Part shown: positions 15,848 through 24,129 of the stretch, piece by piece
How positions within the stretch are numbered: position 1 is the first letter of the stretch
Layout: each line of letters opens with the position of its first letter
DNA from: Oikopleura dioica
Lineage: Eukaryota; Animalia; Chordata
Direction: 5' to 3'
DNA: 64,000 bases
Assembly: GCA_907165135.1 (NCBI GenBank)
Contig: OU015568.1
Location: forward strand, 1,674,001-1,738,000
Translations under genes and position numbers: made by a program
The notes under the pieces: model-generated
What the model was told of the DNA's origin: nothing
What the model saw: only the letters and a program-made list of their open reading frames with translations
Databases searched by the model: none

Positions 15848-18800
15848 TCAACTCATTCCTGACCACTCAAGCGCGTTGTTCTTCTCTTTCCATCTACATC
15901 TTCGTTTCTCTCCATCGTCGATAACTTCCAGTCCCGGGTCACAGTAGATCTGGCATCTGGCTCCAGCTGCGTTATGATTCTCAGAAGAAAGCCATTCTCG
16001 GCCAATCCTGCATTTCCAAGTCCCATTCGGATATTCGTCCAGGGGTCCGGAATCATTTTCAAAAAGGGGAGGGCAGGTTTCAGTATCGTAGTCAACCGGC
16101 GCTTCCCAATCTGTGATCTCGTTGGCTTCATCAGAATCTTCTGGAACACAGTCAAAATCGTCCTGTGTCCACATGCAAGCCTTCGAAAATGTTATTCTTA
16201 GAAGCTAGAAGTAAAATCTTACATCCTGTCGATTGGAGCATCGGCAACGTCTGGTAATATGTCTATTACCGGGGATATAATTCTTCGGACACTGCAGCTT
16301 ACATCTGAAAATCTACTTAGCGTCTTTATGAACACGATGAGCCGTATTTTAGACTTTCGAAAGTGAATCTTTTTGGTTGCATAATGATCGGATCAGCGGC
16401 ATCAACAAAGCTGATTTGAGTCTCAAGAAGAGTCAAGTAACCACTTTTTCTAACGCCATGTTTTCGGGTCAGTATAATTCGAGGGTTGTTTCGTGATCAA
16501 ACTATACCTTGAGTTAAAATGAAAGCCTTTTGAACAGCTCCAGCTTCCGACCTCAGAACTAAGCTCTTCGCAAATACCTCCAGCGACGGGAGCTTGTGTC
16601 GTTATCTCAATATCTTCTTCAGGGAGGCAGAAAAGCTGCTCGTCATTCCAATCACATTTTCCTTTGCGGCATTTGCACCGCAAAACGGTACGGCGCTGCT
16701 CATATCGATCGTTGCATTGAAGTTTGCACTAGTACTGAGCTCATAAAACGTCGTAATTTTAGGAGGAAGATTTTCCGAATTTAATCAAAAATATTTATCG
16801 AACTCTCCTTTGTATCATGAGAATTCCCATCTGTGCACTCCCAGAAACCATTAGGATCTTCAAGCGCCTCACAAAATTCGTCTGCCGCGGTTGTCGTAGC
16901 TTCAGGATCTTTTGTTGTTGGAACTGGCGTCGTGGTTGGCTCTTCTAAGCAGGTTAAGTCTGGTTCAGTCCATCCGCAACCAGTATCAGAACATTCGCAG
17001 GATGTTTTCATTCTGAAAACCGCGTTGAGTCAAGAACATGAAATTCGAGATCATTCGATAATTACCTAGCGTGAGAGTCAAAGAGCGGTTTTTGGCAGCG
17101 AAGTTTACACTAAGAAGGATTATTGTTAAATTGCACAAATAGTTTGTCGGAAGACACGGTTTTGTGTTCCACTGGTAACCTAATAAATAACACGCAACGG
17201 AACTAAATCAAGTATTGTGTGCTACTAAGAAGCTATTATTGCGATCTTCAAACCTGGACACCTTCAGGGAGAGTGTCAGCCAACTCGTATTCTTCTGGGT
17301 TAAATTCGAAGATTTCACCACCCCAGCCTTCAATTTTACAAATCCATTGGGAGCGTTCATGAGGAGCAGTCAATGGTGGGCAGTTTTTGCTTTCATCAAC
17401 TGTTGTTGCTGTTGAAACCCACGACCATGTGGTTGTTTTTGGTGTTAATTCATCAGAAGTCGAGGTAGTATAAACTAGAGTTGACGAAGTAGGATCATAC
17501 GAAGATGTCGATGTTGTTCCTTGATCACTTGTCGTCGATGAAAATGCAGAAGTGCTGGTATAATCTGTCGATGTCGTGGGTCTTGATGATGTTCTGGAGG
17601 TTGTGGAAGTGGGGTCATATGAAGATGTCGTTGTTGTTCCTGAGTCTCTTGTTGTCGTAGAAAATGCGCTAGTGCTGGTGTAATCTGTTGTTGACGTAGT
17701 TTTTGAAGTTGTTCTGGAAGTTGTCGATTCGGTCACAGATGTGGTGTAACCACTTGTGCCGAAAGGAGTAGTTGTAGTTTTTACAGTAGATGTTGTCGTA
17801 GAAGTTGTTGATGTCGTTGTTGTTGTGTAACTAGTCGTAGTTGTGATTTCTGTCGTGGTTGTTGTGGTCGTAGTTGTAGATGAGGTTAAACTTGTGTAAT
17901 CTGTTGTTGTGGTAATTCCTTTCGATGAAGTCGTTGATGAGGTTGTCGCCGAGCTTGTTGTTGTTGACAAGGTCTTTGGTGAAGTTGAAACTGAGCTAGA
18001 AGTCGTCGTGTAATCCGTTGATGTGACAGAACTTGTTGTTGTTGTTGAGCTAGTCGTTGAGATTGCAGTGGTATAATCTGTTGTTTGCGTGGTAGTATAC
18101 TTTGTAGATGACGTTGCAGTTGCTGTTGTCGAAGAAACTGATGATGTATAATCTGTTGATGTTGTAATATCGGTTGTAGATGTGTTCTCAGTCGACGATG
18201 AGTACCCTGTCGATGTTGTATAATCTGATGTTGTCGTTTTTTGTGTTGAGGTTGATGAAAAATAACTCGATGTACTTATTGGTGAGCTCGTAGATGAAGT
18301 TTGATCAGTTGAAGTTGATGTTGTCGTCCTTGTTGTTGTGAATTTGGGCGTTGAAAATGTTGTTGATGTGGTCCTTTCTGTAGTTGTTGTTCCAAATGTG
18401 GTAGTTGAGCTTCCATAAGATGTTGTTGATGTGTACGCCGAAGTTGTTGTTGGTTTGAACGTTGAGGTTGTCGTGGAATATTCAGTTGTTGAAGTTTCGA
18501 ATAGAGTTGATGTTGTCGGTTCAGTTGTGGAGCTGTATAAAGTCTTTTCTTCAGTCGTAGTTTGATAATCAGTTGTGGAGGTCGATGTCTCGAATAGAGT
18601 AGAAGTTGTTGGCTCACTCGTCGTGCTGAAAGAAGAAGACGTTGTCTTTTCGGCAGTGGTCGACTCATAACCAGTTGTTGAGGTTGAGCTCTCGAATACT
18701 GTTGATGTTGTTGGTAAAGTCGTAGAGCTGTACAATGTCGAAGTTGTCTTTCCTGAAGTCGTTGTCCCAAAACCAGTTGTTGTAGAAGTTGACGTCTGAG

Positions 18801-19925
18801 TCGTCGATATTGCAGAGCTCGTCGATGTTTCAGTAGTCGTTGTAGAATAAGTTGTGGTAGAAACTGTAGTCGAGGTAGACGTTGACGTAACTGATGACGT
18901 TGTTGTGATGTCAGAAGTTGTCGACGAGGTTTCAGTTGTTGTTGTAGACGTTCCTCCTGTAGTCTTGGTAGTAATGTCCTCGGTCGAAGTTGTTGTTGAG
19001 ATTGTTGTAGTTGTAGAAGTATTTGTCGTTGTTGTATACTCTGTTGTTGTCGATTCTGGTTCCGTTGTTGTCGTTGTAGTCATTGTGGTGGTAGTAGTTG
19101 TTGAAGTTGTCGTTGTTGATGTTGTCGATCTTGTGGTTGTTGTAGTTGTAGACTTTGTTGTGGTTGTAGTCGATCTTGTTGTTGTCGTGGTGGCAGTTGT
19201 AGTTGTGGTTGTAGTTGATCTTGCTGTGGTGGTGGTAGTTGTTGTAGAGGTAGCTGTTGTAGTTGTTGTCTTTGTTGTGGTTGTCGTCGATCTTGTGGTG
19301 GTGGTGGAGGTTGTTGTAGTTATTGTAGTTGTAGTCTTTGTTGTGGTTGTAGTCGATCTCGTGGTCGTTGTGGTGGTAGTTGTAGACTTTGTTGTAGTTG
19401 TAGTTGATCTTGTGGTTGTGGTGGTGGTTGTTGTTGTTGTGGATGTAGCTGTCGTCGTAGAAGTAGTTGTTGTTTTAGTAGAAGTGGTTGTTGTTGAAGT
19501 TGTAGTCGTTGTGCTTGGTCGTCCCGGACAAAATGTATCAACACCTGATTGTAGTTCAACATCGAAAAATTTCCATTTGCACCCAGTAAAAAGCAGTAAA
19601 AAGCCATTCGATGAAAAACAATCACATTTTGCTACGCCGTGAGCCTCGCCATAATAACAGCTTGGAGTGCATACTGCTCCTGATTCTAGGTTCTCTGGGC
19701 AAGCCCATTCTCCTAGCTCGATTGTTGCAGCGTCATTAATTTTAGTCCCGTTCAAGGATGAGCATGATTCCTAAAAGATAACATAGTGCTTTTTCGAGTC
19801 AATTTTCTTACGCTTGATCTTGAAGCTAATTTATATGTAGTCTCCGCATTGAAAGTATTTTCTTCGTCCAAGTCAAAAGAAAAACACGTTCCAAGCAGCA
19901 AGAACGTGAAAAATCGACTCTTCAT
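15848..19925 (-). CDS. secreted Thr/Ser-rich mucin-like protein with Sushi/CCP-like Cys modules
   Basis: Signal-like MKSRFFTFLLGTCFS (ATG 19925); one Cys module, ~700 aa of T/S-rich sequence in one exon (ORF 17248-19755), then at least four C..W.C....C...C...C.C..C.W modules; no TM segment. Confidence 0.85.
17390..19510 (-). repeat. low-complexity ACA/ACT/ACC codon repeats encoding the mucin domain
   Basis: Imperfect TTTTTRSTTTTTK repeats (~19050-19510) and duplicated blocks such as EPTTSTLFETST and STTDYTSTSAFS..SSYDPTS. Confidence 0.9.
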
Positions 19926-20244: not shown

Positions 20245-23207
20245 TTAAATAAAAGATCCTTGGCAACCTTCTCCAACACAATCTTCAAATGGTCGGACTG
20301 CGGGGATAATTTGAACTTCGGAAGTGTACTCAAATCCGTGAATTCCATCTGGGCCAGGGAAAGCGATCTCGAAGAAAAATGCTCGGTAGGTTTCTGGGTT
20401 TTCTTCCAGTTCGATAACCCAATGGTTCTCGGCAATCTGAGTCGCCATGGTTTTTCGGAAGGTATTCAATTGCGCTTGGAAATCTAAAGATTTTATGAAA
20501 AAAGTCTCGATGCGGAATCATACTAATAAGATCTTCCGGTTTGATCATAGGAGCGGTCCAGGAAGGATCGAATTGTCCATGGCCGCGTGCTTTCGAAGAT
20601 GTGTATTCTCCTGTCAGATTGAAGGCTTTGTACAAATCGTACATACTGTCCTCATCGATGTCCTTATCAGTCAGTTCAAGCTCAACTTCTTCTTCGTCAT
20701 CCTCCGCTGAGCGACCAGCACAAGCATCTGGGCATACAGATCCCTCAGGGCAAGGTCCTTAAGTTTTCAATCTAACAAGAGTATATTCAAATTCTATACC
20801 TGGATATCCGTCAGGCTCGTTCGGCATGTCTGGAAGAAGATAATTTCCTTTTTCATTATTTCGAACTCCGGCAACTCTGAAATCTTTTCTGAATCTCGAC
20901 AGATTGTCGCCCATCCAACCAAAGATCATCGACGGCTGAATCTGTCCAGTAACGTAGAGGTCGATTCGTCCTTTTCGAGAAGCTGCATCTTCTGTAAGCT
21001 CCCAAGTGAACTCCGGAAGAGGTTGATCTTTCACGGCGGCGAGGAAGGTTGATCGAATGGTGAAGGCGAGATGAGGGTTGGAGATTCCATTGAGAAGGGT
21101 ACTAAAAGAATATAAATCCCTTTTACCGGGGTAGACTTCCTCAGGAAGTCCTTACCTGTGATCAGTATTTGGCATCATTCGGATAAATTTCGGCTCTGGC
21201 ATCTCATCCCACCAAAGATTGATATCGTCAGGCATGAAAAACTCGTCTCCGGTCGCAGAAATTACCACTTTAGGCATCGTGAAACGATCTTTGTAAGTAA
21301 AAGGGTCAATGAGGTCCATCATTGGTCGCATATTTGGATCATCAATTCTAAAAAATAAATGTTTGTAATAAACAAAAGCTACTGTATCGGTCAAAAAATA
21401 GTCAAACATACCTGAACTTATTACTTTTGCATTCATGCATGAAAATATAGACGTCTGCCAAGACCATTAAAAATTTGTCATTTAAAAAAATTAGGATAAT
21501 GAGAAACCCGCAATCGCGTTTGACTTTCGATGTAGCAATAACTAACAGAGCCATGAAAAAAATATGACTTTCGCGACCGAGCTCACCTCAATATTGAGTT
21601 TTTTGTACTTAAAAGAACGTCTCGAGAAATAAAAAAAGGAAACAAAATGAAGATCGTATTGACCATTTTCTTTTTTCTCAGCATTGTGTTAGTTCATTTA
21701 TAATTTTTCTCAAAAAACATTATTTCAGGGCTGCTGATGGATGGCTCTCATCGAATTTAAAAAGTCTCATCAACAAATATTCCAGGAGAGTTAATGGTCT
21801 TGGCCCAACCATGAGGTAAGAAATTCATTCCCGTTGAAAAATATTAAAGTTTCTAGAACTCGAGATGCCCCGCATAATCTCTTCCTCACTACGAAACGAA
21901 GCGACCCCGGTTCATCCTTCTTTCTCCGGAATTTTATGACATTCGATTACCCACGTGACCAAACTAGTATTGTTTACAAATAAACTTACCTTCCGTTAAT
22001 ACCTTCGTACCAATAATCCGTAAATGTAAAGGTCCAGTTGCCCATATTTCGCCACATTTGATGCATTATATCATCCATATTTAAAAAGTCTGAAAGCCTC
22101 AAGTTCAAATTTAGAAAAACATTATGAATTTTTTACCAAGAACGATCGGAGCTATCATCACCACTCGCTCAGGGTCAGCAGCAGCTGTCATCCAAGTTGT
22201 CCAGCCTCGTTTTGAAGCACCTTTCATTGTTGATTAAAAATGTATTGAAGACTCACCCAATTTACCTGTGACACCCCATTTGTCTATCTCCGGCCAGCCA
22301 AATTCGTCTTGAACAAATTCTGAGACCATGTCCATTGCCCTCAGAGCTGCTTTTGTCATTGGAAATCTGAGGAGCCACTCTGGCTCGTCTGGAAAATCGA
22401 GAAAGTGACGCCAAGTTATGGCAATGATAGCATCTTCCGTTCGCTTGCACTTCCAGTCGTTGAGGAAAATCAAGCGCTCGTTTGGCACTTGTTTGATTCC
22501 GACAAACACATTGCCTGTTGTTCGAGCGAAGAAACGGCCGTATTGAAGCATGTCGTCCATCAGATTCGGCGGGTTGTTGCTGTTGCCGCTGCCGTCGATG
22601 AGCATGAGAGCCGAGCCGAGAAGCTTCTTGTCGAGGATTTTGTCATTAGGGACCCAAACATTGACCCAGTGCTTCCACACAGTTCGCTCGGGATGATCGG
22701 GACCATCGTTGTCGATGTAATAAACTTAATGTCGAAATGATTATTTTTCATAGAAAATTACAAATGTAATTGCTCGTTCGATAGCCTATCGGGTTATACC
22801 ATGATTCTTTCAAACGACCTTTGCTAGCGCTTTTAATTATTCATCAACGATTGCCAGCTGAAAAATACCCAATTTCTCTTGCGAATTTCAATTTTATGGT
22901 TTTTATCCTAAACCAAAATTTTAAAAATTAGCTCACCCGACTCATTCAGCCATTTTTGCGACTTGAGCAAAAACGCGTATCCAGTGATATCCTTGAACTG
23001 AGTGTACGTCTCTCTCAACTCGTAACTGTAGTATCCGTCCTTTTTCCAAACATACTCGTCAAAAGCGTTGCACAAATCAGTCGGCCTGGTCTTTGGGCAC
23101 GGATTTCTGTAGTAGTCTCTCGGGTTATTCAGGTAATCCTGAGACCAGGAATCTTCCTGGGCGGAAGAAAACGAGGCCAGAACCGCGAGAAATTTGAAAT
23201 TTCTCAT
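20245..23207 (-). CDS. secreted PqaA / AprA-family alpha/beta-hydrolase-fold protein
   Basis: Signal peptide MRNFKFLAVLASFSSA; LKSQKWL, WKHWVNVWVP, KQVPNE, RTEDAIIAITW, WLLRFPMTKAALRAMD, spliced G|ASKRGWTTW, DPFTYKDRFTMPKVVISATGDEFFMPD, C-terminal RAFFFEIAFP...PFEDCVGEGCQGSFI*. Confidence 0.9.
21647..21983 (+). CDS. nested 84-aa secreted peptide precursor with dibasic sites
   Basis: Exons 21647-21687, 21729-21815 and 21857-21983, two 41-nt GT-AG introns, open throughout: MKIVLTIFFFLSIVAADGWLSSNLKSLINKYSRRVNGLGPTMRTRDAPHNLFLTTKRSDPGSSFFLRNFMTFDYPRDQTSIVYK*; AATAAA overlaps the stop. Confidence 0.75.
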
Positions 23208-23462
23208 TTTGCAGCGGATTGCAGGGTAGTTCTGGAAGCGTACCAGAAGAGCAAAGAAGTAAACATGAAAGATGCAAACATATTGCATAGAATAAACATA
23301 AACAAAGCGGGTTATCGTTCGATTTTTATTCTCATTTCATGTATAGCCTATATATGTATAGGACATTTTTGTTATACAGTGAAGGAGTTCACCAAAGTCG
23401 AATTACGAAGACTTTTAGAAGAAACAGATTTCATTTTATCAAACAGTAATTATTCTTCAAAT

Positions 23463-23681
23463 TCAATCGTCTCGAAGCTGGAGCAAATTTTCGGCAGTGA
23501 ATTCTTTTCTGCAGTAAGGACAGCTCGGTTTCTCCAAACTCGCGATGCAGGAGCTGCACATTTTGTGGCCACAGGAAGTGAGGGCGAATTCCAAATGGTT
23601 CCGGTAGTCGTATCGTTCGTAGCAAATCATGCAATGGTAGAAACGGTAGGTGTAGTCGTCCATGTCCTCGCTTCTTGGCAT
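23463..23681 (-). CDS. small RING-HC finger protein (~72 aa)
   Basis: CMICYERY...LTSCGHKMCSSCIASLEKPSCPYCRK fits C3HC4 spacing. Confidence 0.8.
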   Translation of the reverse strand: MPRSEDMDDYTYRFYHCMICYERYDYRNHLEFALTSCGHKMCSSCIASLEKPSCPYCRKEFTAENLLQLRDD

Positions 23682-24129
23682 TTTTATTTTTTTCTTTTTT
23701 TTCTCGATTTTTGGCTTTTTGGATTTTGCGAATTGAATGAAGGACTCCCCAGGGCTTTTTATGTTCTCGAAAATTTTCATGCAACTGCAGGTGATTTTAG
23801 GCCATCTGGAGGGAGGTCAGTTGGCAGAAGAAACAAAGATGGCCTACTTCTGATAGGCAAGGTGGGAGATTTATGCGGTCGATAGCACATTTTAACCTCC
23901 CTAGAAACGGAAAATCTAGGTTAACGATCGAGAACCGCATGACTTGACTGTCATGTCTGTCAGACCTAACCTTTCTGAACCTCCGCGTACGAGGTTCTCT
24001 CCAAAGAAGTTATGCGAACATAACGTAACAATTTTCTAAAATGCAGTGATTTTTCAAACTTAAAGGTTTTTAGTTGAAAAAAATAGACGTTGATAATGTT
24101 TTTAAGAATATTGAACCAAGCTGAAAGAA

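Follow-up and report, generated by a model that had tools for sequence, protein, structure and literature searches.

Does the long intron of a PhoPQ_related gene in the larvacean Oikopleura dioica carry, on its opposite strand, a gene of its own for a small secreted protein? The question was raised by a 64,000-nucleotide (nt) stretch of the genome, here called the window (assembly OKI2018_I69, GCA_907165135.1, contig OU015568.1, positions 1,674,001 to 1,738,000; positions below are those of the window unless another contig is named). In it a first-pass annotation, made from the letters alone, had described three short exons at 21647-21983 as a hidden gene for a neuropeptide or hormone precursor, nested antisense in an intron of the host gene. 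After comparison with a divergent lineage of O. dioica type we consider, with a probability of about 0.7, that the locus is a real and conserved nested gene for a small secreted protein, and that it codes for protein at all we regard as very likely on the comparative evidence.

A spliced frame inside an intron of a PF10142 gene

Reading of the sequence at 21200-22200 together with exon-wise translation reproduced every exon boundary, GT-AG intron, split codon, stop and AATAAA of the model proposed earlier (Table 1), and the spliced frame, antisense to the host gene, runs for 84 codons without a stop, its two split codons being GT/G (V) and AG/A (R). Retention of intron 1 leads to a stop after 4 codons, in the window and in the divergent lineage alike, and retention of intron 2 brings an immediate TAA in the window; since either retained intron gives an early stop in both lineages, the conserved frame of exon 3 needs splicing.

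The open stretch of 62 codons that includes exon 3, when searched against proteins, gave one match, of 84 residues, and the spliced product proved to be identical in every residue to GenBank CAG5078063.1 (UniRef100_A0ABN7RP12), the unnamed AUGUSTUS model Oidioi.mRNA.OKI2018_I69.PAR.g8887.t1 of Oikopleura dioica. Because the two 84-residue sequences are identical, the model has the same exons and splice sites, and the gene can no longer be called hidden. In the OKI2018_I69 annotation, AUGUSTUS was supplied with RNA-seq reads as intron hints and with a Trinity assembly as exon hints (PMC8008620). The record of CAG5078063.1 is without name, function, orthologue or remark on nesting; the orthologue and the nesting are new here.

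The host gene on the minus strand is a member of the PhoPQ_related family (PF10142), with two exons above the Pfam gathering score of 20.3: exon 22237-22680 matches profile positions 47-178 with 105.5 bits, and exon 21155-21346 matches profile positions 240-301 with 67.6 bits (E 1e-18). The profile positions run on across the gap left by the intron, and removal of the intron joins ...YWYEGING through a split AG/A codon to R-IDDPNM..., restoring the conserved GINGR-IDD; two intron-less homologues of the host gene (L007 and L012) read GINGRLDD straight through the junction. The nested coding region 21647-21983 lies wholly inside this intron on the opposite strand. The GT-AG ends, the split codon and the profile matches on both sides thus bear out the earlier claim of a gene nested antisense in a true intron of a PF10142 gene, an arrangement that is also kept in the divergent lineage, while the statement that the gene fills the host intron needs correction, the coding part taking up 337 of the 642 nt. 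The first of the host gene's exons with PF10142 similarity lies at 22911-23288.

An orthologue in a divergent lineage

Using the large host exon as a protein query, we recovered fragments from metagenome and Logan assemblies and then compared their contigs. Contigs from three samples (L005, ENA ERZ27250700; L014/L015, JGI Ga0115008_10005145; L006/L017, Logan SRR33541868) represent one lineage, being 98.6-99.6% identical among themselves, and their host exons are 74-85% identical in DNA to those of the window. If this sister lineage is a non-Okinawa clade of O. dioica, it parted from that of the window over 20 million years ago (PMC11067885). An orthologue of the nested gene was found in the same host intron (662 nt, L005 1319-1980) in L005 and L014/L015, and in part in L006 and L017. 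Both split codons (V and R) are the same in the L005 orthologue, the stop lies again inside AATAAA, and the product has 80 residues, with an amino-acid identity between the lineages of about 44%. The overlap of AATAAA and stop near the host donor, pointed out earlier from the window, is therefore an arrangement kept in the divergent lineage: AATAAA stands 5 nt from the host exon in the window and 12 nt from it in L005. Because the stop overlaps AATAAA at so short a distance in both, the mRNA probably ends, antisense, inside host exon 21990-22108.

An apparent orthologue lacking intron 1, suggested by a tblastn segment of L005 for residues 4-43, was rejected as low-complexity read-through of the 130-nt intron. 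As a separate observation, the Logan contig L006 departs at 1083-1106, its last 24 nt, from L005 1503-1526, a stretch within exon 2 of the nested gene; the cause may be a branch in the assembly or structural variation, and contig L017 of the same sample resumes at L005 1641.

Constraint on the reading frame

The DNA identity of the exons between the window and L005 lies 3-5 standard deviations above that of shuffled sequences. In contrast, the nested introns, unequal in length, do not align between the lineages; the identity of intron 2 and of the regions upstream of the nested gene (299 nt in the window, 233 nt in L005) stays at the shuffle level, and the upstream regions have in common only short words, the best an 11-mer, CCATGAAAAAA. 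Over the in-frame codons the proportion of synonymous differences (pS) is 0.73, near saturation, against 0.355 for nonsynonymous differences (pN), and the differences fall on codon positions 1, 2 and 3 as 37, 17 and 45 (p=0.002). For exon 2 the claimed frame gives 16 identical residues out of 28 with L005 1575-1492, while the five remaining frames are interrupted by stops and reach 6-11; when the L005 intron was shuffled 1000 times, the best shuffle reached 10/28. The length difference of exon 3, 12 nt, is a multiple of three. Stops and frameshifts in other haplotypes, named earlier as the signs to look for against the gene, are absent from the three sister-lineage haplotypes, among which the sole change is a two-base replacement of Pro by Asn in L006. 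The earlier claim of a spliced protein-coding gene thus holds, with a constrained frame kept in a divergent lineage.

It is this comparison alone that gives the locus its significance, since the layout as first described is not beyond chance. When at most two GT-AG introns of 35-70 nt were permitted, a spliced stop-free frame of at least 84 amino acids turned up in 27% of the dinucleotide shuffles of the host intron, and the real host intron also offers spliced frames of 107 amino acids on the plus strand and of 87 on the minus strand.

Features of the predicted product

By simple rules the product begins with a conventional signal peptide: both orthologues have an MK start and a hydrophobic core of 11-12 residues (12 in the window, with a mean Kyte-Doolittle value of 3.0), and V at -3 and A at -1 precede D/N-G-W in both, so that the predicted cut falls after residue 16 (V-x-A). 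The 16-residue signal peptide of the first-pass annotation accordingly has the features expected of it, and these are conserved in the orthologue; on such sequence grounds we judge that the product is probably secreted.

Behind the signal peptide stands a conserved block of about 39 residues, in which 22 of 37 are identical between the window and L005. Its motifs are, in order, GW-x-[ST]-SNL-xx-LIN-x-YS; GLGPT-[MI]-RTR-x-AP; and, behind a short indel that keeps the frame, F-[LI]-T-[TS]-KR. The KR at its end is kept in the orthologue and is the sole conserved dibasic site. Where the window has RR the orthologue has SK, which means that RR cannot be a conserved processing site; the best conserved part of the block runs across it. 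The C-terminal tail after KR has 5 of 27 residues identical, with gaps in frame, and ends in Lys in both proteins. The earlier division into three peptide segments at RR and KR is thus not supported: of the two sites KR alone is conserved, and as regards conservation in another larvacean lineage, the part before KR is conserved and the third segment poorly so. The mature part has no Cys and a net charge of +6. There are no repeated peptides in the product, and no Gly precedes a basic site as amidation would need: in the window S stands before RR and T before KR, and in L005 both corresponding places have S.

The product could be made and used as follows. A lineage-restricted gene of three exons would give rise to the 84-residue protein, which the signal peptide would bring into the secretory pathway; the selected part would be the roughly 39 residues behind the signal peptide, ending at KR, where a proprotein convertase may cut and so free the block from the fast-evolving C-terminal tail, and the mRNA would end a few bases inside the neighbouring host exon, antisense to it. 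Cleavage at KR, as read from the sequence, is a tentative element of this scheme, somewhat less likely to occur than not to occur, and a neuronal or endocrine signalling peptide as the outcome we think unlikely. A signalling, antimicrobial or other role of the product is one that we can only infer.

Searches for relatives

Across the 64-Mb assembly, searched in full with the DNA and exon by exon with the protein, the locus itself was the only match, and the idea that it belongs to a repeat, a transposon or a gene family was given up on that result. An exhaustive phmmer search with exon 3 through 1.84 billion representatives found only the protein itself, as did a word-indexed search with CAG5078063.1 through 5.8 billion clusters, and no homologue beyond the sister-lineage orthologue was met in the searches made. 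No Pfam family matched the nested protein at E up to 10, and no Rfam family was matched. Queried with the whole protein, the ESM Atlas gave as neighbours almost exclusively small precursors of neuropeptides or hormones (PDH, NPF, DH31, galanin, PrRP, NPS and spexin among them), with a top score of 0.91 and 141 common features, spread over ten different families. By the Atlas calibration such a pattern means that the family is probably wrong, at least 170 features being expected of true members, and once the signal peptide and the tail were removed all scores fell below 0.9. We take the result as a likeness at the level of class, that of a short secreted precursor-like protein, and not membership of a family.

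The comparison with known systems gives a mixed picture. The nested protein resembles animal prepropeptides, including those specific to Ciona (PMC6475428), in its length of roughly 80-100 residues, N-terminal signal peptide, lack of any domain, predicted disordered body and dibasic sites with a conserved KR. It is unlike them in that no pair of conserved cleavage sites encloses the conserved block, which comes immediately after the signal peptide, RR is not conserved, and amidation Gly, repeats and a family match are lacking. The top Atlas neighbour, pigment-dispersing hormone (PF06324), occupies the C-terminal end of its precursor, behind KR, as an amidated peptide of 18 residues, whereas the conserved block here is N-terminal and without a Gly-basic end, and PF06324 gave no profile match at E up to 10. 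With genes for orphan small secreted proteins our gene has in common that it is short and fast-evolving, has a signal peptide, and is without a paralogue in the genome or a homologue outside the O. dioica complex. As in other nested antisense genes of animals, a single intron accommodates the entire coding region on the opposite strand and the arrangement is kept between lineages; it differs from other nested genes in that the 642-nt intron is made mostly of the guest gene, whose AATAAA is 5 nt from the host exon.

Alternative explanations

Several results weigh against a conserved gene for a secreted protein. Besides the 27% of shuffled introns with an equally long frame, two KR/RR sites occurred in 27% of shuffles of the mature part. 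A 15-billion-protein collection contained no spliced copy besides the annotation's own protein. The comparison is one of two lineages, in which the conservation of KR, two residues, is of little weight, and the call of secretion depends on simple signal-peptide rules. The AlphaFold2 model from the single sequence, a helix at 2-36 followed by disorder, is of low confidence (pLDDT, its per-residue confidence score, 62.6), and the helix amphipathicity of the segment behind the signal peptide, measured as hydrophobic moment, falls short of significance (p=0.15 and 0.06). A chance open frame or gene-predictor artefact without function could draw on the frequency of long frames in shuffled introns, on the want of homologues in 1.8-5.8 billion proteins and on the ability of AUGUSTUS to predict genes without hint support; it is nearly refuted, because the gene structure and a constrained frame persist in the orthologue amid flanking intron DNA in which no similarity is left. 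Hardly better placed is the proposal that the intron contains a regulatory antisense RNA or a non-coding host element, such as a structure aiding removal of the long intron, with an incidental open frame. For it speak, along with a frame that alone does not exceed chance, a perfect 14-nt inverted repeat between 21457-21470 (upstream) and 21791-21804 (exon 2, codons V-N-G-L-G), which has a chance of about 0.001 in 741 nt and is unexplained, the RNAduplex energy of its arms, which beats 300 of 300 shuffles in the window, and a 9-nt upstream complement to the same exon 2 position in L005. In L005, however, the duplex energy does not reach significance (p=0.14) and the upstream arm has no homology to its Okinawa counterpart; with significance confined to the window, the idea that exon 2 and the upstream region form a conserved RNA pair was rejected. 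Moreover, the substitutions follow codon positions, ATG, stop, splice sites, exon lengths and phases are kept with the indel in frame, the minus-strand frames carry stops, and Rfam gave no match; we therefore hold a non-coding element to be very improbable.

If the gene is coding, the nature of the product has still to be weighed. The first-pass annotation saw in it a classical neuropeptide or hormone precursor, cleaved at RR and KR into three peptides that neurons or gland cells would make. The signal peptide with the two dibasic sites, the conservation of KR and of the C-terminal Lys, and the assorted neuropeptide precursors among the Atlas neighbours agree with it; the replacement of RR by SK inside the conserved block, the poorly conserved third segment with its gaps, the want of amidation Gly and repeated peptides, the empty Pfam and phmmer searches and an Atlas pattern calibrated as a wrong family all disagree. 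Of that reading the signal peptide and KR survive, a function of prohormone type being possible in view of the conserved KR and the Atlas neighbours; the scheme of three peptides is the least likely version of the product, and the classical precursor as a whole appears improbable to us. Another candidate is a secreted effector that would work through the entire chain of 68 residues or through its N-terminal helix, be it a cationic peptide with an antimicrobial or defence role or a lesser constituent of the filter house. The net positive charge without Cys, the predicted helix directly after the signal peptide, and fast evolution (pN 0.36) with lineage restriction, typical of immune and surface genes, are in its favour, but the hydrophobic moment does not support it, basic residues are fewer in the orthologue's helix (H, D and S where the window has K, S and K), and neither antimicrobial nor house proteins already described showed any similarity; such an effector seems rather unlikely, if less so than the classical precursor. 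About as speculative as the effector is an extended form of our own reading, by which the gene would found an Oikopleura-restricted family of secreted signalling peptides with the 39-residue block as the active, KR-released part, would have arisen with or in a newly gained long intron of the PhoPQ_related gene, and would be coupled in expression to the host gene by the antisense overlap. The nested gene for a small secreted protein, left without a closer assignment of function, is the reading that we retain.

The host intron and its homologues

The median intron of the O. dioica genome measures 49 nt (PMC8008620), and the host intron is about 13 times as long. No terminal inverted or direct repeats were found in it, and a transposon origin was rejected for want of such repeats. 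No intron occurs at the host-intron position in the reachable homologues L007 and L012 or in the own-genome paralogue L013. L007 (1120-1300) and L012 (790-960) are host-gene homologues from Tara and other metagenomes; L007 has instead a 42-nt intron eight codons upstream, so the PF10142 genes of larvaceans do not all have their introns at the same positions. By identity L007 lies closer to the host gene than to the paralogue (77% vs 62%). The candidates L009-L012 as intron-absent orthologue are weakened, P0006 being equally close to the paralogue L013 and to the host gene. Since the orthology of the intron-less homologues is uncertain, we make no claim of intron gain; that intron and guest gene go together is a reasonable lead.

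Elsewhere in the genome the host family PF10142 (PhoPQ-activated pathogenicity-related) gave nine matches besides the host gene, with 39-67% identity, three of them at one C4 locus; the matches include C1:16624018-16624470, C5:1356900-1357274, C4:6831232-6831698 (L013) and C1:7239677-7240027. Some contain in-frame stops, which may be introns.

The genome of O. dioica is noted for extreme rearrangement (PMC11067885), and the nested arrangement has survived in two lineages. A host intron found, among the homologues compared, only where the guest gene is found makes the locus a small natural case for the origin of long introns and nested genes in a compacted genome. It is also a clean example of a tiny gene validated only through cross-lineage comparison, in a group whose peptide signalling is almost unmapped, and catalogues built on homology commonly miss orphan secreted peptides. 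In practical terms the gain is modest, since a public gene model existed already.

Coordinates and neighbouring genes

Table 1. Positions of the nested gene, its host intron and flanking host exons in the window, and of the orthologue in contig L005.
Feature	Position	Strand	Description
Host intron	21348-21989	-	642 nt, phase 2; donor GTAAGT, acceptor TTTTTTAG; contains the whole nested coding region
Host exon upstream of intron	21990-22108	-	ends ...YWYEGING + AG
Host exon downstream of intron, open part	21155-21347	-	starts A + IDDPNMRP...
Upstream region of nested gene	21348-21646	+	299 nt from host acceptor to nested ATG; presumed promoter and 5' untranslated region; not conserved
Nested gene exon 1	21647-21687	+	41 nt; ATG at 21647, most of predicted signal peptide; phase 2 end (GT of GT/G Val)
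Nested gene intron 1	21688-21728	+	41 nt, GT-AG, GTTAGT...TTTCAG
Nested gene exon 2	21729-21815	+	87 nt; predicted signal-peptide end (V-A-A/D), predicted helix, conserved GLGPT block, RR site
Nested gene intron 2	21816-21856	+	41 nt, GT-AG, GTAAGA...TTTCTAG
Nested gene exon 3	21857-21983	+	127 nt including TAA stop (21981-21983); conserved RTR-x-AP and F-[LI]-T-[TS]-KR, then poorly conserved C-terminal third with final Lys
AATAAA overlapping stop codon	21979-21984	+	5 nt short of host exon; putative poly(A) signal
Orthologue exon 1	L005 1747-1707	opposite to host	41 nt; length and phase as in window
Orthologue intron 1	L005		130 nt (41 nt in window), GTAAGT...ATCAG; common to both only at splice-site ends
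Orthologue exon 2	L005 1576-1490	opposite to host	87 nt; length and phase as in window
Orthologue intron 2	L005		44 nt (41 nt in window), GT-AG; identity at shuffle level
Orthologue exon 3	L005 1445-1331	opposite to host	115 nt (127 nt in window)

Two further open frames of the minus strand were noted in the window. One, of 105 codons at 23463-23780, contains a RING finger (PF14634 and related, E 1e-8) and lies just upstream of the PF10142 exon 22911-23288. The other, 835 codons long at 17248-19755, consists nearly throughout of repeats rich in Thr/Ser, has ends with Cys and resembles a mucin; it accounts for the strong GC and AT skew at 18-20 kb.

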